A stretch of 64,000 nucleotides of DNA from NCBI RefSeq assembly GCF_023055435.1, contig NW_025964024.1, positions 4,402,001 through 4,466,000 of the forward strand, written 5' to 3'. The translations under genes were made by a program, and so were the position numbers. Positions 837 to 50,115 of the stretch are shown one piece after another; positions within the stretch are counted from its first letter, which is position 1, and the number at the start of each line of letters is the position of its first letter. The stretch is from Haliotis rufescens. Taxonomy: Eukaryota. The notes under the pieces are model-generated. The model searched no databases. It saw only the letters and a list, made by a program, of their open reading frames with translations, and was not told the origin of the DNA.

Positions 837-893
837 TCTACATACATACCATGTCAGTTTCTGCATATGTACCATGTCAATTTCTGTTTGTAG

Positions 894-1022
<129 letters not shown>

Positions 1023-1374
1023 TAGGAAAGTCCTCATATCTTCACCATGCGTTCTGTGCCTCGATATCACTAGCATACATTCACATTAGTAATGGTCAAT
1101 AAATTCTGCTAGTTTTCTATCACATTGAACATTGCATGACTATTGGTATTTTAGTGGTTTAATAAGCAGAACATTTTGAGAGGGAAATAAAAAATATATT
1201 TTCCACTTTCATAACCGTCATGGCTTTTTAATGCAAAACACACTTAGAAGTAAGTGATCAATGTCACAGTACATCACACATGTTGTTCATCAACTGCAGG
1301 GATAGAACTATGATATTTCACTGACGGTTTTGGCTGTAAGTGGGCGATAAGTATACACATTGTATTTTATAAAA

Positions 1375-3755
1375 TATGTACATTATAGGGCACTAGATAT
1401 ATACATTATAGACAAGTAGATATATACATTGTAGGCACTAGATATACACATTATAGACCACTAGATATACACATTATAGACCACTAGATATATACATTGT
1501 AGGCCACTAGATATGCACATTGTAGGCACTAGATATACACATTGTAGGCACTAGATATACACATTGTAGGCACTAGATATACACATTGTAGGCACTATAT
1601 ATACACATTGTAGGCACAAGATATACACATTGTAGGCACTAGATATATACATTGTAGGCACTAGATATACACATTGTAGCACTAGATATGCACATTGTAG
1701 GCACTAGATATATACATTGTAGGCACTAGATATACACATTGTAGGCACTAGATATACACATTGTAGGCACTAGATATACACATTGTAGGCACTAGATATA
1801 CACATTGTAGCACTAGATACACATTGTAGGCACTAGATATACACATTGTAGCACTAGATATGCACATTGTAGGCACTAGGTACACACATTGTAGACACTA
1901 GATATACACATTGTAGGCACTAGATACACATTGTAGGCACTAGATATACACATTGTAGCACTAGATATACACATTGTAGGCACTAGATACACACATTATA
2001 GACCACTAGATATACACATTGTAGGCACTAGGTACACACATTGTAGACACTAGATATACACATTGTAGGCACTAGGTATACACATTGTAGGCACTAGATA
2101 CACATTGTAGGCACTAGGTATACACATTGTAGACACTAGATATACACATTGTAGGCACTAGATACACACATTATAGACCACTAGATATACACATTGTAGG
2201 CACTAGGTACACACATTGTAGACACTAGATATACACATTGTAGGCACTAGGTATACACATTGTAGGCACTAGATACACATTGTAGGCACTAGGTACACAC
2301 ATTGTAGACACTAGATATACACATTGTAGGCACTAGATACACATTGTAGACACTAGATATACACATTGTAGGCACTAGATACACATTGTAGGCACTAGAT
2401 ATACACATTGTAGGCACTAGATACACATTGTAGGCACTAGGTATACACATTGTAGGCACTAGATACACATTGTAGGCACTAGATACACATTGTAGGCACT
2501 AGATATACACATTGTAGCACTAGATACACATTGTAGGCACTAGATATACACATTGTAGGCACTAGATACACATTGTTGGCACTAGATATACACATTGTAG
2601 ACACTAGATATACACATTGTAGGCACTAGATATACACATTGTAGGCACTATATGTACACATTGTAGGCACTAGATATACACATTGTAGGCACTACATATA
2701 CACATTGTAGGCACTAGATACACACATTGTAGGCACTAGATATACACATTGTAGGCTACTAGATGTTCACAGTATATACCACTAGATATACACATAGACC
2801 ACTAGATATATACATTGTAGGCCACTAGATATGCACATTGTAGGCACTAGATACACACATTGTAGGCACTAGATACACATTGTTGGCACTAGATATACAC
2901 ATTGTAGACACTAGATATACACATTGTAGGCACTAGATATACACATTGTAGGCACTATATGTACACATTGTAGGCACTAGATATACACATTGTAGGCACT
3001 ACATATACACATTGTAGGCACTAGATACACACATTGTAGGCACTAGATATACACATTGTAGGCTACTAGATGTTCACAGTATATACCACTAGATATACAC
3101 ATAGACCACTAGATATATACATTGTAGGCCACTAGATATGCACATTGTAGGCACTAGATACACACATTGTAGGCACTAGATACACATTGTTGGCACTAGA
3201 TATACACATTGTAGACACTAGATATACACATTGTAGGCACTAGATATACACATTGTAGGCACTATATGTACACATTGTAGGCACTAGATATACACATTGT
3301 AGGCACTACATATACACATTGTAGGCACTAGATACACACATTGTAGGCACTAGATATACACATTGTAGGCTACTAGATATTCACAGTATATACCACTAGA
3401 TATACACATAGACCACTAGATATATACATTGTAGGCCACTAGATATGCACATTGTAGGCACTAGATACACACATTGTAGGCACTATATATACACATTGTA
3501 GGCACTAGATAAACACATTGTATACCACTAGATACACACATTATAGACCGCTAGATATACACGTTATAGACCACAAGATATACACATTGTAGGCCACTAG
3601 ATATATACATTGTAGGCTCTAGGTACACACATTGTAGGCAATAGATATACACATTGTAGGCACTAGATATGCACAATGTAGGCACAAGAAATAGACATTG
3701 TAGGCACTAGATATACACATTGTAGACACAAGATATACACATTGTAGGCCACTAG
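1375..3755. repeat. 22-bp minisatellite (cactagatatacacattgtagg)n with a 307-bp higher-order repeat
   Basis: About 105 units. The variant agat(g/a)ttcacagtata recurs at 2761, 3068 and 3375. Confidence 0.97.
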
Positions 3756-4796
3756 TTATCTGGAAAACAAACCATTGTTAAGGAGTAATGTCCTTTGTAT
3801 ATATGTAGACCTTTATGACAAGAATTGCCAAAAATGCAAGATTTCCAGACAAACAGGTTTTCCTCATGTTGAAATTCCACTTAACAGGATTGTACTCTTT
3901 GTATTTTAATCCATCTCTTCTGGACTGAAGGCCCAGCAGAACTTGTATAGTGTGCATTGCCTGTCGTTATCTCAGTGTTATGCAGCCCCATGTAAAGGGG
4001 GATGTTAACAGGTTTTGTCAGAATTTGGCCCCTGATGCTGCACTGGATCTCTGTTGTGAAAACTTGAAGTGCATGTAATCAACTTGAGTAATCAATCATT
4101 CCAGAAGTGTTGTGTTTAAATGAATTTGTTTTCAAAACATTTATCTGTCAGGTCAGGTCAAGGTCAAGTAGGTCAGTGAAACTTGTTTGTGTCATCCTTG
4201 GGACATAGCTGCTATCTGAAAAGGTAGTGAGTGACCTTAATGGTCAAGGTCACACTGAAGGTCTTTTATAAATATTTGGGTTTTTTTCACTAAAATACCT
4301 TTTCCAGAATGTAGTAGTTATATTATTGAAATACTTATGATGGCAAGTGATGACAGTCTTACGATGTCAGTACCAGGTCACCGTGACCTACTTTCTATGA
4401 TTAGAATGTGCTTGAGGTTTAGGAAGTACCGATACTTGCAAACAGTTTTCTAGCTGTCTTCACAATGTTTTGCTCACATAAATCTGGCTCATAACAGGCC
4501 ACCATGACAATCACCTAACCCATTCATGTACCGGTACTCTTCACAATATTTTACTCACATCAGTCTGGGTCAGACCGTGCCACACTGTCCATGAACTGTC
4601 CCTTCGTCAATTATCAAAAGGTCTTAAACTTTGCAAGGATAATTCAAGCAAATGTGTCTTTAAAAACGATTTTAATTGTGGTCATACTGTAGGTTTCATT
4701 TTGTTATATATGCAGTTTTTGTATTCTTTTCAAGTTTGATACATGGGAAGTATTTGATAAATGGATGAGTTGTAGATTCTGATGCATGATCGTTAT

Positions 4797-4961
4797 CCAT
4801 TCGTGCCGTAAAAGGCGACTATGCTTGTCGCAAGAGGCGAATAATGGAATCGGGTGTCAGGTTTGCTGTCTTGGTTGATGCATGTCATCGTATCCCACTT
4901 GCGTGGATCGATGCTCATTATGTTAATCACTGGATTGTCCGGTCCAGACTTGATTATTTAC
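4797..4961 (+). mobile_element. Family A fragment
   Basis: Internal match to the family A consensus. Confidence 0.75.
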
Positions 4962-5397
4962 AAACTTTCTGAATAAGAAATACCTTCATTCAAAGTCTAG
5001 TTTGGTTTCCATTGTAGCCACTTTCAAAATACATGAGTAACTGTTTTTGCACAGAATGTTAAAGTTTGGTACAGGGTAGTATGCCATTGCTTTGATGTTA
5101 TTAAGTTTTACTTACCAATACCTTTGTCATCCCTATCATAGAAATTTATTTGAAGCCAGGTGAGCTACAGAGCCAGGGTTATGTTTTCAAAAGGCAACAA
5201 GTTTTTTACTTGTTCTTCGGATTCCCCACCTCAGTCTTTAGATGTAAGAATTTGTATTTGGCATAAACTAAACAGTGTTGTACTGTACTGTAACCAAACA
5301 TTTTGAATATATAACATCAACTACAGAGAATAACCAGTCTTTATTATCTGTCGAAACAGATTCCATTGGGCGTAAAAGGCAAAATAGAGGTGAAAAT

Positions 5398-5640
5398 TCC
5401 ATGCTTGCCCATGCTTGCTGTAACAGGCGACTATGCTTGTCGTAAGAGGCGACTAACGGGATCGGGTGGTCAGACTCGCTGACTTGGTTGATGCATGTCA
5501 TCGTATCCCAATTGATTGATGCTCATGATGTCAAACACTGGATTGTCTGGTCCAGACTTGATTACTTACAGACCGCCGTCATATAGTTGGAATATTGCTG
5601 AGTGCGGCTAAAACAACAAACAAACAAACAAAACAAAACA
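5398..5640 (+). mobile_element. Family A, 5'-truncated
   Basis: Matches the consensus from ccatgcttg through the (caaa)n tail. Confidence 0.8.
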
Positions 5641-5876
5641 TTCTTTCCTTGAAATGTTGAAGCAAAAGCTCAACCGTTTGAAAATTCAGTTAACAGTTCA
5701 TTAGTATTCTTCCATTTGCGATGATAAACTTTTGAAATTAATTAAAATTAAAACATGTTATTGGGTTCAGAGATAAGAAAGAAAATAAGTTGCGTTCTAT
5801 CTCTACTGACAAAGCCCGAAGAACAAGTAATCAATTTGTCAATAATGATGTGTTTAAATGAAATTATTTGTTTCAG

Positions 5877-5966
5877 GAAATTAGCTGGCTGTTACTATTA
5901 CTACAATGCATTTATATGTGGAATACCTGCGTGCGCAGTGTCGTTACTGATAGAAAGAAAAGACAG
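5877..5966 (+). CDS. TMEM135: TMEM135 exon 3a, 90 nt, phase 2 to 2 (first of two paralogous exons)
   Basis: atttgtttcag acceptor and CAG|gtatca donor. Translates (R)KLAGCYYYYNAFICGIPACAVSLLIERKD(R), compared with recalled TMEM135 [31 protein letters not shown]. In frame with both flanking exons. Confidence 0.88.
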
Positions 5967-6023
5967 GTATCATACAATCATCTCATTCCATCGTACACCT
6001 GTAGCCAGGTCTAGTCTGTGTCA

Positions 6024-6400
6024 GCATCTGCCGCACAACGCACAGGGGGCACTCGTCGGGGGGGACACTGTACTTACCATGTCTGTGTTCACCTATATGA
6101 TTCTGATGGAAAGTAGTTATCGGAAGTGCAATGCGATCATGCTGCACTTTGAATAATTTATGTGCTAAAACATATGGCGACAATGATGATACATATATCT
6201 GGTTTCCGACATTGGATATAAGATGTTATACACAATGCACATGGGGTGTAAGAAGGTAATTATTTAATTAATAGAAAGCCTTAATTCATTTATTTTGGTG
6301 GAGACAAGTAAATAAAAAAAAACCAATTTCGTGTGACACATTAGTGTAGTGGGTGCTGCTCCTGTTGAAGTGCCCCCTGTCTGGGTTCTGTGCCGGATGT
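6024..6400 (+). promoter_or_regulatory. Putative intronic long-range RNA stem 1 between exons 3a and 3b
   Basis: Perfect 12-bp complement acagggggcact (6042-6053) / agtgccccctgt (6369-6380). Flanked in register by gcatctg/cggatgt, gcac/gtgc and cactgtact/agtgtagtg (G-U pairs allowed). Confidence 0.6.
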
Positions 6401-6417
6401 GTGTGTGTTGTGGCTTC

Positions 6418-6563
6418 TGACAACCAACCAACTTGCTGTTGTAACAGAGAGATTCAAAAGTTCATTATTTTCTTGCTACATCCCCACCACCAGCCTCTGA
6501 ACCCAATAATCACACTTTCTGGAGGTGACAGAGGTTGGGGTTTGTGCAGTTGGTTTGTTGTCA
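6418..6563 (+). promoter_or_regulatory. Putative intronic RNA stem 2 upstream of exon 3b
   Basis: tgacaaccaaccaact (6418-6433) / agttggtttgttgtca (6548-6563), 15 of 16 bp paired. Nested helix ccagcctctg (6490-6499) / cagaggttgg (6529-6538). Confidence 0.6.
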
Positions 6564-6644
6564 CTTCTATTCAGGAATGTCGCTTCACACGTTTTGATCT
6601 CTTTTTGTAATAGAAAACTTATTTTGTTTCTTTTGACTCTCCAG

Positions 6645-6734
6645 GAAAATCTCGGGCCGTTTTTATTTCAACTCCCCTTTTCTCTCGGCGTATTGTGGCG
6701 CCTTTGTAGCTATTCTACTGGAACGGAAATCCAG
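6645..6734 (+). CDS. TMEM135: TMEM135 exon 3b, 90 nt, phase 2 to 2 (second paralogous exon)
   Basis: ttttgtttcttttgactctccag acceptor and CAG|gtatag donor. Translates (R)KISGRFYFNSPFLSAYCGAFVAILLERKS(R). Same length and phase as 3a. Confidence 0.88.
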
Positions 6735-7224
6735 GTATAGTGAATGTTGAAATGTATAGAACACAGAAAACTGTCAATAATGTTACGCAAAGTACAAGTG
6801 TAACAAGATCAGTTAAGAAAATTAAAATCATACTCCAATTGTTGCAATTTATTATCAGCTTATGTAATGCTTACTTTTAGAATAGATTTAGTAATGTGCT
6901 TTTTTGAGAAGAGTGTGAGATATCAAAATTGCCATCAGCTACTGGAATTTAACATTTTATGACTTCTTGGCTTATTTTGTGCAAAATATTATAACAAGAA
7001 ACTACTAATCATGCTAATCTATTTGAGAGTTACACTGATCACAATTTATGTTGTTTTTTAAAATCCAACAAATGGTGTCAGGATTGTTCTATAAAGATGA
7101 CCAGGATTTTGTTGGCTTGTAAGGTTCATTGATCCAACAAAATGAGATGATAAGCAATACACCACAGCATGAAGCATTTTTTTCTTCACATTAATCATAA
7201 TGAAGTGGTAAATGAAATACCCAA

Positions 7225-23805: not shown

Positions 23806-24057
23806 GGTCTGCGGCTGCCGTGTGACAGCTCACACCTGGGGGAGGGGGGCATGACATCTACATGTCATACCCAGATTATGCACACTCACTGAGCCTGGAT
23901 TACCCAGGGGTCAACACAGGGCCTGCACACCTGGATGATCGTGTTGACCAGGGATCTCGTAGTGTAATTAGGGGTCAGTGAATCACATGGAAGCAGGTAG
24001 ACATACTCACGGGATCAGTGATTCTAAAGTTGGGTTGTATGTGGTATCAGTCACAAT

Positions 24058-24195
24058 GATGTGAGGTGAAATGGGGTTTGACATCGCGTTCAAGATTGTT
24101 GCACTTATATTGTGACAGGCATGCATGCGTGAGGGCGTACTTATCTGGACTAATGTAAATTTTATATTGCTAGCCCACTGTGATACCCTGCCGCA
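24058..24195 (-). mobile_element. SINE family D, 3' fragment abutting a satellite
   Basis: gtgaggtgaaatggggttt through tgctagcccactgtgatacc. Confidence 0.7.
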
Positions 24196-24199
24196 GTTT

Positions 24200-27100
24200 C
24201 CCCCCTCCAACTTCCATGACCACCCCCTCTAACTCCCATGGCCTCCCCCTCTAACTTCCATGACCACCCCCTCTAACCTCATGGCCTCCCCCTCTAACTT
24301 CCATGACCACCCCCTCTAACCTCATGACCTGCCCCTCTAACCTCATGACCACCCCCTCTAACTCCCATGGCCTCCCCCTCTAACTCCCATGGCCTCCCCC
24401 CCTCTAACTTCCATGACCACCCCCTCTAACTCCATGGCCTCCCCCTCTAACTCCCATGGCCTCCCCCTCTAACTCCCATGGCCTCCCCCCTCTAACCTCA
24501 TTGCCTACCCTTCTAACTTCCATGACCACCCCCTCTAACCCCATGACCCCCTTCTAACCCCATGGCCTCCTCCTCTAACTTCCATGACCACCCCCTCTAA
24601 CTCCCATGGCCACCCCCTCTAACTCCCATGGCCTCCCCCTCTAACTTCCATGACCACCCCCTCTAACTCCCATGGCCTCCCCCTCTAACTCCCATGGCCT
24701 CCCCCCTCTAACCTCATGGCCTACCCTTCTAACCCCATGACCACCTCCTCTAACCCCATGACCACCCCCTCTAACCCCCAAGACCACACCTCTAACCCAA
24801 AGACCACCCCCTCTAACCTCCATGACCACCCCCTCTTACCTCATGACCACCCCCTCTAACCCCATGACCACCCTTCTAACCCAATGACCACCCTTCTAAC
24901 CTCCATGACCACCCCCTCTATCCTCCATGACCACCCTTCTTACCTCCATGACCACCCTTCTAACCCTATGACCACCCCCTCTTTCCTCCATGACCATCTC
25001 CTCTATCCTCCATGACCACCCTTCTAACCCCATGACCACCTCCTCTAACCCCATGACCACTCCCTCTTTCCTCCATGACCACCCTTCTAACCCCATGACC
25101 ACCCCCTCTTTCCTCCATGACCACCCCCTCTAACCCCATGACCACCCCCTCTTTCCTCCATGACCACCCCCTCTTTCCTCCATGACCACCTCTTCTTACC
25201 TCCATGACCACCCCCTCTAACCCCATGACCACCTCCTCTAACCTCCATGACCACCCCCTCTAACCCCCATGACCACCGCCTCTATCCTCCATGACCACCC
25301 TTCTAACCCCCATGACCACCCTTCTAACCCCATGACCACCCCCTCTATCCTCCATGACCACCCTTCTAACTCCATGACCACCCTTCTAACCCCATGACCA
25401 CCTCCTCTTACCTCCATGACCACCCTTCTAACCCCATGACCACCCTTCTAACCCCATGACCACCGCCTCTATCCTCCATGATCACCCTTCTAACCCCATG
25501 ACCACCCCCTCTATCCTCCATGACCACCCTTCTTACCTCCATGACCACCCTTCTAACCCCATGACCACCCCCTCTTTCCTCCATGACCACCGCCTCTATC
25601 CTCCATGACCACCCTTCTAACCCCATGACCACCTCCTCTAACCTCCATGACCACCCCCTCTTTCCTCCATGACCACCCCCTCTTTCCTCCATGACCACCT
25701 CTTCTTACCTCCATGACCACCCCCTCTAACCCCATGACACCTCCTCTAACCTCCATGACCACCCCCTCTAACCCCCATGACCACCGCCTCTATCCTCCAT
25801 GACCACCCTTCTAACCTCCATGACCACCCTTCTAACCCCATGACCACCCCCTCTATCCTCCATGACCACCCTTCTAACTCCATGACCACCCTTCTAACCC
25901 CAAGACCACCCTTCTAACCTCCCTGACCACCGCCTCTATCCTCCATGACCACCCTTCTAACCTCCATGACCACCGCCTCTATCCTCCATGACCACCCTTC
26001 TGGCCCCATGACCACCCTTCTAACCCCATGACCACCTCCTCTTACCTCCATGACCACCCTTCTAACCCCATGACCACCGCCTCTATCCTCCATGATCACC
26101 CTTCTAACCCCATGACCACCCCCTCTAACCTCCATGACCACCCTTCTAACCCCATGACCACCGCCTCTATCCTCCATGATCACCCTTCTAACCCCATGAC
26201 CACCCTTCTTACCTCCATGACCACCCTTCTAACCCCATGACCACCCCCTCTTTCCTCCATGACCACCGCCTCTATCCTCCATGACCACCCTTCTAACCCC
26301 ATGACCACCTCCTCTAACCTCCATGACCACCCCCTCTTTCCTCCATGACCACCCTTCTCACCCCATGACCACCCCCTCTAACCCCATGACCACTGCCTCT
26401 AACCCCATGACCACCCCCTCTTTCCTCATGACCACCCCCTCTAACCCCATGACCACCCCCTCTTTCCTCCATGACCACCGCCTCTATCCTCCATGACCAC
26501 CCTTCTAACCCCATGACCACCTCCTCTAACCCCATGACCACCCCCTCTATCCTCCATGACACCCTTCTAACCCCATGACCACCTCCTCTAACCCCATGAC
26601 CACCCCCTCTTTCCTCCATGACCACCCTTCTAACCCCATGACCACCCCCTCTTTCCTCCATGACCACCCCCTCTAACCCCATGACCACCCCCTCTTTCCT
26701 CCATGACCACCCCCTCTTTCCTCCATGACCACCCCTTCTTACCTCCATGACCACCCCTCTAACCCCATGACCACCTCCTCTAACCTCCATGACCACCCCC
26801 TCTAACCCCCATGTCCACCGCCTCTATCCTCCATGACCACCCTTCTAACCTCCATGACCACCCTTCTAACCCCATGACCACCCCCTCTATCCTCCATGAC
26901 CACCCTTCTTACCTCCATGACCACCCCCTCTAACCCCATGACCACCCCCTCTTTCCTCCATGACCACCGCCTCTATCCTCCATGACCACCCTTCTAACCC
27001 CATGACCACCTCCTCTAACCTCCATGACCACCCCCTCTAACCCCCATGACCACTGCCTCTATCCTCCATGACCACCCTTCTAACCTCCATGACCACCCTT

Positions 27101-29093
27101 CTTACCCCATGACCACCCCCTCTATCCTCCATGACCACCCTTCTAACTCCATGACCACCCTTCTAACCCCATGACCACCCTTCTAACCTCCATGACCACT
27201 GCCTCTATCCTCCATGACCACCCTTCTAACCTCCATGACCACCGCCTCTATCCTCCATGACCACCCTTCTAGCCCCATGACCACCCTTCTAACCCCATGA
27301 CCACCTCCTCTTACCTCCATGACCACCCTTCTAACCCCATGACACCCTCTCTTTCCTCCATGACCACCCCCTCTAACCCCATGACCACCCTTCTAACCCC
27401 ATGACCACCCTTCTAACCTCCATGACCACCCCCTCTAACCCCATGACCACCCTTCTAACCCCATGACCACCGCCTCTTTCCTCCATGACCACCCTTCTAA
27501 CCCCATGACCACCCCCTCTTTCTTCCATGACCACCCCCTCTAACCCCATGACCACCTCCTCTTACCTCCATGACCACCCTTCTAACCCCATGACCACCTC
27601 CTCTTACCTCCATGACCACCCTTCTAACCCCATGACCACTGCCTCTATCCTCCATGACCACCCTTCTAACCCCATGACCACCTCCTCTAACCTCCATGAC
27701 CACCCCCTCTAACCCCCATGTCCACCGCCTCTATCCTCCATGACCACCTTTCTAACCTCCATGACCATCCTTCTAACCCCATGACCACCCCCTCTATCCT
27801 CCATGACCACCCTTCTTACCTCCATGACCACCCCCTCTAACCCCATGACCACCCCCTCTTTCCTCCATGACCACCGCCTCTATCCTCCATGACCACCCTT
27901 CTAACCCCATGACCACCTCCTCTAACCTCCATGACCACCCCCTCTAACCCCCATGACCACTGCCTCTATCCTCCATGACCACCCTTCTAACCTCCATGAC
28001 CACCCTTCTTACCCCATGACCACCCCCTCTATCCTCCATGACCACCCTTCTAACTCCATGACCACCCTTCTAACCCCATGACCACCCTTCTAACCTCCAT
28101 GACCACTGCCTCTATCCTCCATGACCACCCTTCTAACCTCCATGACCACCGCCTCTATCCTCCATGACCACCCTTCTAGCCCCATGACCACCCTTCTAAC
28201 CCCATGACCACCTCCTCTTACCTCCATGACCACCCTTCTAACCCCATGACACCCTCTCTTTCCTCCATGACCACCCCCTCTAACCCCATGACCACCCTTC
28301 TAACCCCATGACCACCCTTCTAACCTCCATGACCACCCCCTCTAACCCCATGACCACCCTTCTAACCCCATGACCACCGCCTCTTTCCTCCATGACCACC
28401 CTTCTAACCCCATGACCACCCCCTCTTTCTTCCATGACCACCCCCTCTAACCCCATGACCACCTCCTCTTACCTCCATGACCACCCTTCTAACCCCATGA
28501 CCACCTCCTCTTACCTCCATGACCACCCTTCTAACCCCATGACCACTGCCTCTATCCTCCATGACCACCCTTCTAACCCCATGACCACCCCCTCTAACTC
28601 CCATGATCATTCCTCTTACCCCATGACCACCCCCTCTAACTCCCATGATCATTCCTCTTACCCCATGACCACCCCCTCTAACTCCCATGATCATTCCTCT
28701 TACCCCATGACCACCCCCTCTAACCTCCATGATCATCCCTCTGACCTCCATGACCACCCCCTCTAACCTCCATGACCACCCCCACTAACTTCTGTGACCA
28801 CCCCTCTAACTCCCATGATCATCCCTCTAATCTCCATGACCACCCCCTCTAACTTCTATGACCACTCCTCTAACCTCCATGACCTGCCCCTCTAACTTCC
28901 ATGACCACCCCTCTAACTCCCATGATCATCCCTCTAACCTCCATGACCACCCCCTCTAACTTCCATGACCACTCCTCTAACCTCCATGACCACCCCCTCT
29001 AACTTCCATGACCACTCCTCTCACCTCCATGACCACCACCTCTAACCTCCATGACCACTCCTCTAACCCCATGACCACCACCTCTAACCTCCT
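24200..29093. repeat. 4.9-kb C-rich 20-23-bp minisatellite (ccatgaccaccc(c/t)(c)tctaacc)n with a 907-bp internal duplication
   Basis: Identical translated blocks at 27373 and 28280 (offset 907). Confidence 0.97.
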
Positions 29094-30379
29094 TGTCATG
29101 ATATGGCTGAAATAATGTCGATGTGACGTTAAATATTAATTCACTCACTCTATCCTCCATGACCACCCCCTCTCATCCCTCTAATTTATATATGTTAATC
29201 AGGAATATAAACTTTCCTGGAAAAGCACGAACTTGTCCTTCCATAGGCATCAAGTGTCCTTGTTTAATCATTGTACGTGGAGTGTTGGATGCATACTGCA
29301 GTGCTTGAAACACACTGGCCCTCTGCTTGTCATGTCCTCACAGACTCTCAATACCAGTCTTTGATGAAATCCCAGCAACAATGACATAATCTACTCAATG
29401 CCTTTGATATTATTTGAAGGACTTTCTTTTTGAGTAAATTCTGTGTTGGGCAAAAATAGAAAAGTTTTTCATTTCTTGTTCAGTCGCATCAATTTCCACC
29501 TGTTTTTCAAACGGAATTTTATTTCAAGGCCAGGGCTGATTCTGTAAGAAAAAAAGAAACGCAACTTCTTTTGGGGCTGAGTAGACAAATTGTCACCACA
29601 AGACCACATCTGAACAGCCATGTTTAGTTTGACTGGCTCTAATGGATTAACAGCAACAGGGCACCATAAAAATGAAGGAATCGAGGATGACAGGATAACC
29701 TGACTTCTGATGTGACCATTATGAAGTAAAACTTGCTTCCATTATGATCTCAACAAAGCATTTGCTGCCAGGAATGACTGACAGGGGCAAAGGGATGGAG
29801 CCCATTGATTGAGTGCTTCCCCTGCTGTATGAATGCCCCTTTCACTTTGGGAGGAAAAAATACAAATATTCTTGCAATTTTGTATGTTCTTGATTTGCAA
29901 GCATCAGAATTTGTTTGATATGGCTAGAATGGAGGATGTAAATAAAGCACTGGTTAAATATAGTGTTGTCAGTGGAGGGAGGGAGAGGTGTTTGGTCAGG
30001 CTTTACCTGGAATCTCGTGGCAGGTACTTGTTTTTGTGGGCAAATTACACACTTCCCGGCAGTTATTTCATGAATGTGTGACAAGCTAGCAGGGGAGAAG
30101 GGCGTGGGGTCTGATTGTCACGATTACAACACTATATCAACTTATCTGTCGAAATTCAATTAGCATCGGTTGTGTGATTGTTTGTACATTTAATGTTGAT
30201 TTGCTGTGTCACTTGTAGTCCGTGGGCTGTTACGTCATGTACTGCATCCTGTTATTGTCCCTCTGTCCACAGATCGACCTTGTGCCCCGTGCTTTGTGGA
30301 CAATGATGAAGACATGTTCACAAATACTGGGGACGTTTTATTTGCTGATCTGACGTGATTTTTGGTGTTTCTTTTTTAG

Positions 30380-30413
30380 GCGGGGACTGCTGGCTGTTTA
30401 CCTTACAAACTTG
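30380..30413 (+). CDS. TMEM135: TMEM135 exon 4, 34 nt, phase 2 to 0
   Basis: gtttcttttttag acceptor and TTG|gtgagt donor. Translates (R)RGLLAVYLTNL, compared with recalled RGLLTIYMANL. Confidence 0.9.
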
Positions 30414-33159: not shown

Positions 33160-35560
33160 GTGCTCTTCTTCCTCCTAGTACACTGCAACACCGCCCTCTT
33201 CTCCACCCAGTACAACACCGCCCTCTTCTCCACCCAGTACACTGCAACACCGCCCTCTTCTCCACCCAGTACACTACAACACCGCCCTCTTCTCCACCCA
33301 GTACACTGCAACACCGCCCTCTTCTCCACCCAGTACACTACAGCACCGCCCTCTTCTCCACCCATTACAACACCGCCCTCTTCTCCACGCAGTACACTGC
33401 AACACCGCCCTCTTCTCCACCCTTTACAACACCGCCCTCTTCTCCACCCAGTACACTGCAACACCACCCTCTTCTCCACCCAGTACAACACCGCCCACTT
33501 CTTCACCCAGTACACTGCAACACCGCCCTCTTCTCCACCCATTACAACACCGCCATCTTCTCCACCCAGTACACTGCAACACCACCCTCTTCTCCACCCA
33601 GTACAACACCGCCCACTTCTTCACCCAGTACACTGCAACACCGCCCACTTCTCCACCCTGTACACTTCAACACCGCCCACTTCCCCACGCAGTACACTAC
33701 AACACTACCCTCTTCTCCAACCAGTACAACACTGCCCTCTTCTCCACCCAGTACACTGCAACACTGCCCTCTTCTCCACCCAGTACAACACCGCCCACTT
33801 CCCCACGCAGTACACTACAACACTACCCTCTTCTCCACCCAGTACAACACCGCCCACTTCCCCACGCAGTACACTACAACACCGCCCTCTTCTCCACCCA
33901 GTACACTGCAACATTGCCCTCTTCTCCACCCAGTGTACTGCAACACTGCCCTCTTCTCCACCCAGTACGCTGCAACACCGCCCTCTTCCCCACCCAGTAC
34001 AACACCGCCCTCTTCTCCACCCAGTACAACACCGCCCTCTTCTCCACCCAGTACACTACAACACTGCCCTCTTCTCCACCCAGTACACTGCAACATTGCC
34101 CTCTTCTCCACCCAGTGTACTGCAACACTGCCCTCTTCTCCACCCAGTACACTGCAACACTGCCCTCTTCTCCACCCAGTACACTGCAACATTGCCCTCT
34201 TCTCCACCCAGTGTACTACAACACCGCCCTCTTCTCCACCCAGTACACTGCAACACTGCCCTCTTCTCCACCCAGTACACTACAACACTGCCCTCTTCTC
34301 CACCCAGTACACTGCAACATTGCCCTCTTCTCCACCCAGTGTACTACAACACTGCCCTCTTCTCCACCCAGTACACTACAACACCGCCCTCTTCTCCACC
34401 CAGTACACTACAACACCGCCCTCTTCTCCACCCAGTACACTGCAACATTGCCCTCTTCCCCACCCAGTACAACACCGCCCTCTTCTCCACCCAGTACACT
34501 GCAACACTGCCCTCTTCTCCACCCAGTACACTACAACACTGCCCTCTTCTCCACCCAGTACACTGCAACATTGCCCTCTTCTCCACCCAGTGTACTACAA
34601 CACTGCCCTCTTCTCCACCCAGTACACTGCAACATTGCCCTCTTCTCCACCCAGTGTACTGCAACACTGCCCTCTTCTCCACCCAGTACGCTGCAACACC
34701 GCCCTCTTCCCCACCCAGTACAACACCGCCCTCTTCTCCACCCAGTACACTGCAACATTGCCCTCTTCTCCACCCAGTACACTACAACACTGCCCTCTTC
34801 TCCACCCAGTACACTGCAACATTGCCCTCTTCTCCACCCAGTGTACTACAACACCGCCCTCTTCTCCACCCAGTACACTGCAACATTGCCCTCTTCTCCA
34901 CCCAGTGTACTGCAACACTGCCCTCTTCTCCACCCAGTACGCTGCAACACCGCCCTCTTCCCCACCCAGTACAACACCGCCCTCTTCTCCACCCAGTACA
35001 CTGCAACATTGCCCTCTTCTCCACCCAGTACACTACAACACTGCCCTCTTCTCCACCCAGTACACTACAACACTGCCCTCTTCTCCACCCAGTGTACTGC
35101 AACACTGCCCTCTTCTCCACCCAGTACGCTGCAACACCGCCCTCTTCCCCACCCAGTACAACACCGCCCTCTTCTCCACCCAGTACACTGCAACATTGCC
35201 CTCTTCTCCACCCAGTACACTACAACACTGCCCTCTTCTCCACCCAGTACACTGCAACATTGCCCTCTTCTCCACCCAGTGTACTGCAACACTGCCCTCT
35301 TCTCCACCCAGTACGCTGCAACACCGCCCTCTTCCCCACCCAGTTCAACACCGCCCTCTTCTCCACCCAGTACACTGCAACATTGCCCTCTTCTCCACCC
35401 AGTACACTACAACACTGCCCTCTTCTCCACCCAGTACACTACAACACTGCCCTCTTCTCCACCCAGTACACTACAACACCGCCCACTTCTCCACCCCAGT
35501 ACACTGCAACACCACACTCTTCTCCACCCAGTGCAACATCATGCTCTTTTCCCCCCTCCC
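33160..35560. repeat. 32/27-bp minisatellite (cacccagtacactgcaacactgccctcttctc)n
   Basis: Direct inspection. No stop codon in any + frame, which explains the long spurious ORFs. Confidence 0.97.
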
Positions 35561-36111
35561 AGTACAATGCTGCACTCAAGTTCTTCCCCCTTACCCCAAT
35601 ACCACAACACCACCCATGTTTTTCTACTCCCAAAACCACAATTCCTCACCACCCCCCTCAAACACTGCGCTCTTCTATCCCCCCAATACAACACTGCGCT
35701 CTTCTCCCCCCAATTACCACAACTCCACACTTTTCTCCCCCAAGGGATGGCAGCTACAGTCCTCCACATACCGCACCTTGTCGTGCTGTTGTGCTGATAC
35801 TCTCCCCTATAAAATTTAATTAGAATGAGACGAAACTAAAATCATTGCTTTAATGATGGGTTATTGATAAAATAAAAAAAAGTAGCTAATCTTCCTCCTC
35901 GTAAATCTGTCAAGTGAGCTGCAAATTATGTGGGAGTCATGATTTTCTCTTGTTACCGTGGGTACGGGAAGGGTTCGGGAAGGGTAATATTTCTGTGTGC
36001 TGATTGTTTCATGCAGGATTTAATTACATAAGATTGTAGGCTAAAGTAGCGTATTTAGGCTACGTCTTCATTGGGCATGTTCCATGCTGTTTGCCTTAGG
36101 TCCTGGGGCTA

Positions 36112-50049: not shown

Positions 50050-50115
50050 GCACTGGAGACAGCGTACAGAATGGCCAAATTCAGGGGCCTCATCAAGCCA
50101 GTCGTACATGGAGAG
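50050..50115 (+). CDS. TMEM135: TMEM135 exon 5, 66 nt, phase 0 to 0
   Basis: tgttgtgtttcag acceptor and GAG|gtaggt donor. Translates ALETAYRMAKFRGLIKPVVHGE, compared with recalled [22 protein letters not shown]. Confidence 0.9.

Follow-up and report, generated by a model that had tools for sequence, protein, structure and literature searches.

In the abalone Haliotis rufescens, the gene for TMEM135, a membrane protein of peroxisomes and mitochondria, very probably carries an ancient tandem duplicate of one coding exon, and each mRNA would take one of the two copies, 3a or 3b, giving two 447-aa proteins that differ only in residues 93-121. Both copies lie in a 64-kb stretch of genomic DNA (hereafter, the window). 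We interpret 3b, the predominant copy in the abalone RNA sampled, as the canonical type, with a helix proline 12 residues before a conserved glutamate and the end ERKS, and 3a as a divergent type that is always 29 aa long and has its helix proline 9 residues before the glutamate. The choice between the two would be regulated, and the resulting helix swap may retune how the first Tim17-like domain packs or contacts lipids or partners. The initial annotation knew of no described mutually exclusive splicing in this gene, and this held for papers, as full-text literature searches found none describing alternative exons in TMEM135; however, it did not hold for RefSeq models, which list both forms. 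The 3a/3b pair is thus absent from the papers found and present in RefSeq, and it is of the same kind as known exon pairs.

The duplicated exons, the neighboring exons, and the candidate pairing arms around 3a are listed in Table 1. Two exons of equal length (90 nt) and the same phase, with canonical splice sites, no stop codons, and a spacing of 678 nt, had been described in the initial annotation, and all of these properties were confirmed at the same coordinates. Each acceptor consists of a pyrimidine-rich tract followed by AG and each donor begins with GT (gtatca in 3a and gtatag in 3b), so that both exons have usable splice sites. In each exon, the first nucleotide closes the exon 2 codon and the last two nucleotides belong to a split codon that is closed by the first base of exon 4. 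The two 29-aa peptides reported earlier are indeed the translations of 3a and 3b, and the flanking exons (exon 2 at 894-1021 and exon 4 at 30380-30413) had also been placed correctly. Aligned without gaps, 3a and 3b share 46 of 90 nt and 9 of 29 aa; the earlier count of about 8 of 29 residues is corrected accordingly, and the homology that it implied stands. None of 5,000 shuffles attained this nucleotide identity or the local BLOSUM62 score of 51. A tblastn search of the 64-kb window, in which 58 exon-3 peptides of other species served as queries, recovered 3a and 3b and no third exon-3 copy.

Table 1. Positions of TMEM135 exons and of candidate pairing arms in the window.
Feature	Position	Strand	Description
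TMEM135 exon 2	894-1021	+	42 codons plus 2 nt; constitutive; PF15982 E 9.5e-11; donor joined to 3b in RNA contigs
Candidate pairing arm upstream of 3a	5758-5772	+	perfect 15-nt complement of 6495-6509
Candidate purine-rich arm	5775-5791	+	17 nt, 94% complementary to 6616-6632; low-complexity, weak
Exon 3a	5877-5966	+	90 nt; alternative residues 93-121; Cys/Tyr-rich 'CGIPAC' type helix; end ERKD
3a-3b intron	5967-6644	+	678 nt
Partner arm of 5758-5772	6495-6509	+	within the 3a-3b intron
Partner arm of 5775-5791	6616-6632	+	lies in the pyrimidine tract before the 3b acceptor
Exon 3b	6645-6734	+	90 nt; canonical-type residues 93-121; end AILLERKS
Exon 4 (RGLLAVYLTNL)	30380-30413	+	acceptor common to both alternatives; 100% identical by tblastn to X1 and X2 at residues 122-133
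Exon 5 (ALETAYRMAKFRGLIKPVVHGE)	50050-50115	+	100% match to RefSeq; 3' end uncertain by ~4 nt

Of TMEM135, the window holds exons 2 to 5; a six-frame search of the species' own 1.33-Gb genome detected a single TMEM135 locus, with exon 1 about 6 kb upstream of the window. The Pfam profile TMEM135_C_rich (PF15982) matched exon 1 with 52 bits, exon 2 with 43 bits, and 3b with an E value of 0.02 (profile positions 83-112). Exon 3a alone had no Pfam match in either the window or the six-frame genome search, and 3b was matched in both. Exons were searched one by one, and RefSeq proteins were reached by phmmer with exon 1 and then by protein searches. Exon 1 (49/49 aa) and exon 2 (42/42 aa) are identical to the H. 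rufescens TMEM135-like isoforms X1 and X2, and these RefSeq proteins carry PF15982 together with PF02466 (C-terminal Tim17 domain), which identifies the gene as TMEM135 (PMP52). A protein search restricted to residues 50-135 of X2 (P0120) returned only six matches.

Isoform X1 (P0124, 447 aa) contains 3b and isoform X2 (P0120, 447 aa) contains 3a, each 29/29 identical to the window, and the two proteins are identical except in residues 93-121. Homologous exons therefore fill the same residues of otherwise identical proteins, in agreement with the earlier proposal that both correspond to a single TMEM135 segment and give two helix-swapped isoforms. The either/or forms are already listed in the automated RefSeq annotation, and in the related H. 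cracherodii the X2 protein matches abalone 3a at 28 of 29 residues.

Several features of the introns were recorded alongside the exons. A run of 135 N lies at 419-553 in intron 1, just 5' of exon 2. Intron 2 contains two copies of a very high-copy repeat (4631-5028 and 5228-5625), for which summed contig depth ranged from 1e4 to 1e7 in all four sequencing runs described below and many joints skipped ~600-620 nt between the copies. Further downstream, positions 24001-30000 and 34001-36000 have a GC content of 0.53-0.57 and a GC skew of -0.6 to -0.8, being C-rich on the + strand; these stretches, located in introns of 23.6 kb and 19.6 kb, probably consist of satellite or low-complexity DNA.

Splicing was assessed with Logan contigs of four runs over positions 850-6800, of which X1, X3, and X6 are RNA from three studies and X18 is genomic DNA of a related sample, with contigs that are contiguous through exons and introns. 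In RNA run X1 (record 1), a 478-nt contig aligned to 893-1019 and then directly to 6643-6735, giving an exon 2-3b junction at which the letters 'ag' are assignable to either side; its 101 and 157 extra end letters have sizes fitting exons 4 plus 5 and exon 1, respectively. The same junction was present in a 308-nt contig of RNA run X6 (record 24). For RNA run X3 (record 16), an exon-2 contig has 74 further downstream letters, and it appears to continue into 3b because the depth of the bin 6621-6800 (2.1) equals 5.1 x 74/180. In all three RNA runs, the part of these contigs on exon 2 spans 893-1019. Exon 3b is thus the predominant form in the abalone RNA sampled, across three data sets. The junctions that the initial annotation had singled out for mapping were accordingly recovered in part: exon 2 joined to 3b was seen in the three RNA runs, whereas no contig with spliced 3a, and no 3a-3b joint, was found among the Logan contigs of those runs. 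Because rare variants drop out of such contigs, this result suggests that 3a is minor in the three runs rather than absent, and in abalone 3a probably serves as a minor form or as one limited to certain tissues or conditions, its use being supported by the RefSeq models and by conservation.

RNA run X3 also contained an unspliced contig (record 23) spanning 5579-6589, across 3a and most of the 3a-3b intron. Its depth is approximately that of the spliced exon-2 contig, and it could represent pre-mRNA, intron retention, or another transcript.

We classified the exon-3 segment in ~60 TMEM135 proteins. Pairs of isoforms from the same gene that differ in the exon-3 segment only, and that are equal in length or one residue apart, were found in H. 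rufescens (3b in X1 and 3a in X2, both 447 aa), Littorina saxatilis (3b in X1, 502 aa; 3a in X2, 501 aa), Mytilus californianus (X1, 463 aa; X2, 462 aa), Argopecten irradians (X1, 455 aa; X2, 454 aa), the brachiopod Lingula anatina (X1 and X2, both 454 aa), and the nemertean Lineus longissimus (X1 and X2, both 449 aa), with X1 carrying 3b and X2 carrying 3a in every case. In annelids, both types are represented by models of Owenia fusiformis (462 and 477 aa), which also differ by a 16-residue N-terminal extension, and 3a-type isoforms are annotated in Physella, Biomphalaria, Elysia, Magallana, Mizuhopecten, Dreissena, Mercenaria, and Mya as well. Both types are present in gastropods, bivalves, Lingula, Lineus, Owenia, and Paralvinella. 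The 3a segment is 29 aa long in 23 of 23 spiralian sequences, and the 3b segment is 29-32 aa long. Mean cross-species identity was 0.50 among 3a sequences and 0.53 among 3b sequences, compared with 0.31 between 3a and 3b within species. The duplication predates the split of molluscs, brachiopods, nemerteans, and annelids, because abalone 3a is closer to nemertean 3a (20/29) than to abalone 3b (9/29). Between H. rufescens and H. rubra, identity is 25/29 for 3a, 23/29 for 3b, and 370/416 for the rest of the protein; judging from such comparisons, both copies are under purifying selection. The earlier claim that the duplication is old and that selection acts on the two copies was right and understated, since the two types extend across four spiralian phyla, with the 3a type kept in molluscs, a brachiopod, a nemertean, and annelids.

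In Dreissena polymorpha, three different versions of exon 3 are annotated as alternatives, namely a 3a type of 29 aa (X4), a version of 32 aa (X3), and a 3b type of 40 aa (X2), in addition to a form that skips the exon (X5) and a model carrying two copies in tandem (P0126, P0215, P0220, P0232, and P0014 in all). The exon-3 cluster of this species may have expanded to three exons.

At the protein level, AlphaFold2 models based on 53-54-sequence alignments reached a mean pLDDT of 88.8 with 3a and 90.4 with 3b, and the secondary structure was identical, so that the modeling of both isoforms that had been suggested earlier returned the same predicted fold. Residues 93-121 comprise the end of a helix (66-95), a short loop, a 16-residue helix (102-117), and the turn before a further helix (120-144), with a pLDDT of 90-96 over residues 91-120 in both models. 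The best fold matches were 6lo8_A (Tim22, Z 8.9), 6g2j_Y (NDUFA11, Z 8.8), and 8e1m_A (Tim17, Z 8.3), with a Foldseek probability of 1.00; they come from a VIA-align wide search, with Z scores that are moderate for helical bundles and aligned ranges that are ambiguous as to the half of the protein. A Foldseek search against the PDB gave no match at E <= 0.001. On these fold matches, the protein has a Tim17-family fold (a four-helix membrane domain like those of Tim17, Tim22, Tim23, and NDUFA11), in agreement with the description of TMEM135 as eight membrane helices in two Tim17 domains (Zarsky and Dolezal 2016, PMC5072337). The models suggest that a switch between 3a and 3b replaces helix 3 of the first Tim17-like domain together with the preceding loop. 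Residues E118, R122, and R123 are invariant in both isoform alignments. The 3a type follows the pattern '..GFY.F.NVF.CGIPA...ERKD', in which the Cys-Gly-Ile-Pro-Ala motif is conserved, and the last exon residue before the RR motif is Asp or Glu in the 3a of most species and Ser in 3b and in nearly all other animals.

Could 3a instead be a decaying or unused duplicate (a pseudo-exon) in abalone, and isoform X2 an annotation artifact? The missing Pfam match of 3a and the lack of a spliced 3a contig in three RNA runs would be expected in that case, but the reading frame is open, the AG and GT sites are intact, and identity to the 3a of H. cracherodii and H. rubra is on par with that of the remaining residues. 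The identity to nemertean 3a and the constant length in the 23 spiralian sequences are also incompatible with more than 500 Myr of neutral decay, and we regard the decay of 3a as extremely improbable.

A further question is whether the two exons exclude one another. Both are 3n long, so neither reading frame nor nonsense-mediated decay enforces exclusivity, and at 678 nt the intervening intron exceeds the length at which steric exclusion would operate; being spliceable, it places no steric block on joining 3a to 3b. The exons might therefore be independent cassettes, with all four combinations (3a, 3b, both, or neither) made and all in frame. RefSeq and GenBank models of several molluscs would fit such an arrangement, as both exons are present in those of H. 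rubra (477 aa, P0210), Magallana gigas X1 (481 aa, P0263), Mytilus galloprovincialis X1 (493 aa, P0133), Patella, Pinctada, and Nucella, as well as in the annelid Paralvinella, and neither exon is present in M. galloprovincialis X4, Biomphalaria X4, and Dreissena X5. P0125, P0128, and P0203 are likewise among the proteins with both exons. All of these both-exon models share the order 3a then 3b, and exon order in other species was inferred from such models only. However, the tandem models gain a 30-residue extra helix; with both exons the protein would have an additional membrane helix and with neither it would have one fewer, and in either case the topology downstream would invert in this two-domain Tim17-like protein. 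Moreover, pairs of single-exon isoforms of the same length, or one residue apart, recur in at least seven species of three phyla, several of the both-exon models (H. rubra, Patella, Pinctada, and Nucella) are single ab initio-style models, and the 3a-3b joint is absent from the abalone RNA contigs. The both-exon models of H. rubra, the oyster (X1), Patella, Pinctada, and Nucella are likely annotation errors or rare transcripts, and they serve as a warning for genome annotation. On balance, independent inclusion of the two exons seems quite unlikely, and we favor the use of one of them per mRNA.

The age of the pair beyond the spiralians was examined in a tree of exon peptides (IQ-TREE), which is weak at 30 columns. 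All 23 spiralian 3a sequences fell on one side of a branch (76/84), and another, well-supported branch (97/89) united spiralian 3a with eight of nine deuterostome exons, while 3b grouped with arthropods, a nematode, and the unicellular outgroup Capsaspora. This grouping reflects a shared proline register: the helix proline lies 9 residues before the conserved Glu in 3a and deuterostome exons, which share 'G.PA[CS]', and 12 residues before it in 3b, ecdysozoans, and Capsaspora. Such a pattern would be explained if the pair dated to the bilaterian ancestor and was followed by reciprocal loss, in which a 3a-like exon survived in deuterostomes and a 3b-like one in ecdysozoans, while spiralians kept the two as an either/or switch. 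Because an AU test did not reject a clade of all spiralian exons, as expected of a spiralian-only duplication (p = 0.29), we treat a bilaterian origin as a possibility, and a rather doubtful one.

Echinoderm TMEM135 has one exon-3 type, and isoform pairs there differ only in the exon-2 segment (residues ~50-92), where homologous alternatives of 42-47 aa are found in Apostichopus japonicus X1/X2 (P0247/P0194), Amphiura filiformis (P0253/P0088), and Strongylocentrotus purpuratus (P0255/P0205). These alternatives appear to be a distinct exon pair that exchanges the adjacent helix.

Among other animals, TMEM135 (PMP52) of vertebrates, arthropods, and nematodes has a single exon 3, which covers the same segment as the abalone pair, has the same E-x-x-x-RR(G) end, and aligns with 3b; it differs from the abalone arrangement in that one exon type only is present in the proteins sampled. 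Vertebrate and ambulacrarian exon 3 combines a proline in the 3a register (9 before Glu) with a 3b-like C-terminal half.

How one exon would be chosen may involve the introns. Exon choice in mrp-1 is reportedly assigned to competing intronic RNA pairing. TMEM135 resembles mrp-1 in having equal-length tandem exons and intronic complementarity flanking the first variant exon, and one possibility is that intronic base pairing loops out 3a, which would fit 3b as the default. A 15-nt match such as that between the arms upstream of 3a and within the 3a-3b intron (Table 1) has an estimated chance expectation of ~0.002 per 2.2 kb. The 3a-3b intron has a minimum free energy of -189.8 kcal/mol (z -2.83, 20 shuffles), and duplexes of this intron with the sequence 5' of 3a gave an energy z of -2.76 (1/100 shuffles), with two control pairings unremarkable; these duplex z-scores are rough, being based on mononucleotide shuffles and unrestricted duplexes. 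On the other hand, two related samples carry G5764>T and no compensating change is listed, which argues against a conserved pair between 5758-5772 and 6495-6509. In this respect TMEM135 differs from mrp-1, as its pairing is a candidate from one sequence. The mutually exclusive exons of mrp-1 / MRP1 are of equal length and of independent origins (Yue et al. 2017, as cited in PMC7434440).

The closest parallel in kind is the exon pair 6a/6e of coq-2, which remodels the enzyme core of the COQ-2 polyprenyltransferase in nematodes, flatworms, annelids, and molluscs (Tan et al., eLife 2020, PMC7434440), directs the choice between ubiquinone and rhodoquinone, and has been shown to switch in usage with anaerobiosis (PMC7434440). 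In both genes, the segment exchanged between homologous alternative exons belongs to the membrane-embedded core of a protein of organellar membranes, one copy is pan-eukaryotic-like and the other lineage-restricted, and both events occur in molluscs and annelids. The function and the switch are known for coq-2, whereas the TMEM135 helix swap is known here from sequence and predicted fold. No 3a-type exon was detected in the nematode or flatworm TMEM135 proteins sampled.

TMEM135 has been tied, in the sources cited, to peroxisomal lipid metabolism and mitochondrial fission (PMC10541902, PMC10993500). A helix swap kept for more than half a billion years in four phyla would mark this helix, and its acidic versus serine end, as functionally critical, and the 3a and 3b isoforms would provide ready-made variants for structure-function work on TMEM135. 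The TMEM135 pair adds to the deep spiralian exon-pair switches in organellar membrane proteins, of which coq-2, whose switch proved to govern metabolism, is an example. If the bilaterian-origin scenario were true, then, counting also the alternative exon 2 of echinoderms, helix swaps would have affected the first Tim17-like domain of TMEM135 repeatedly.
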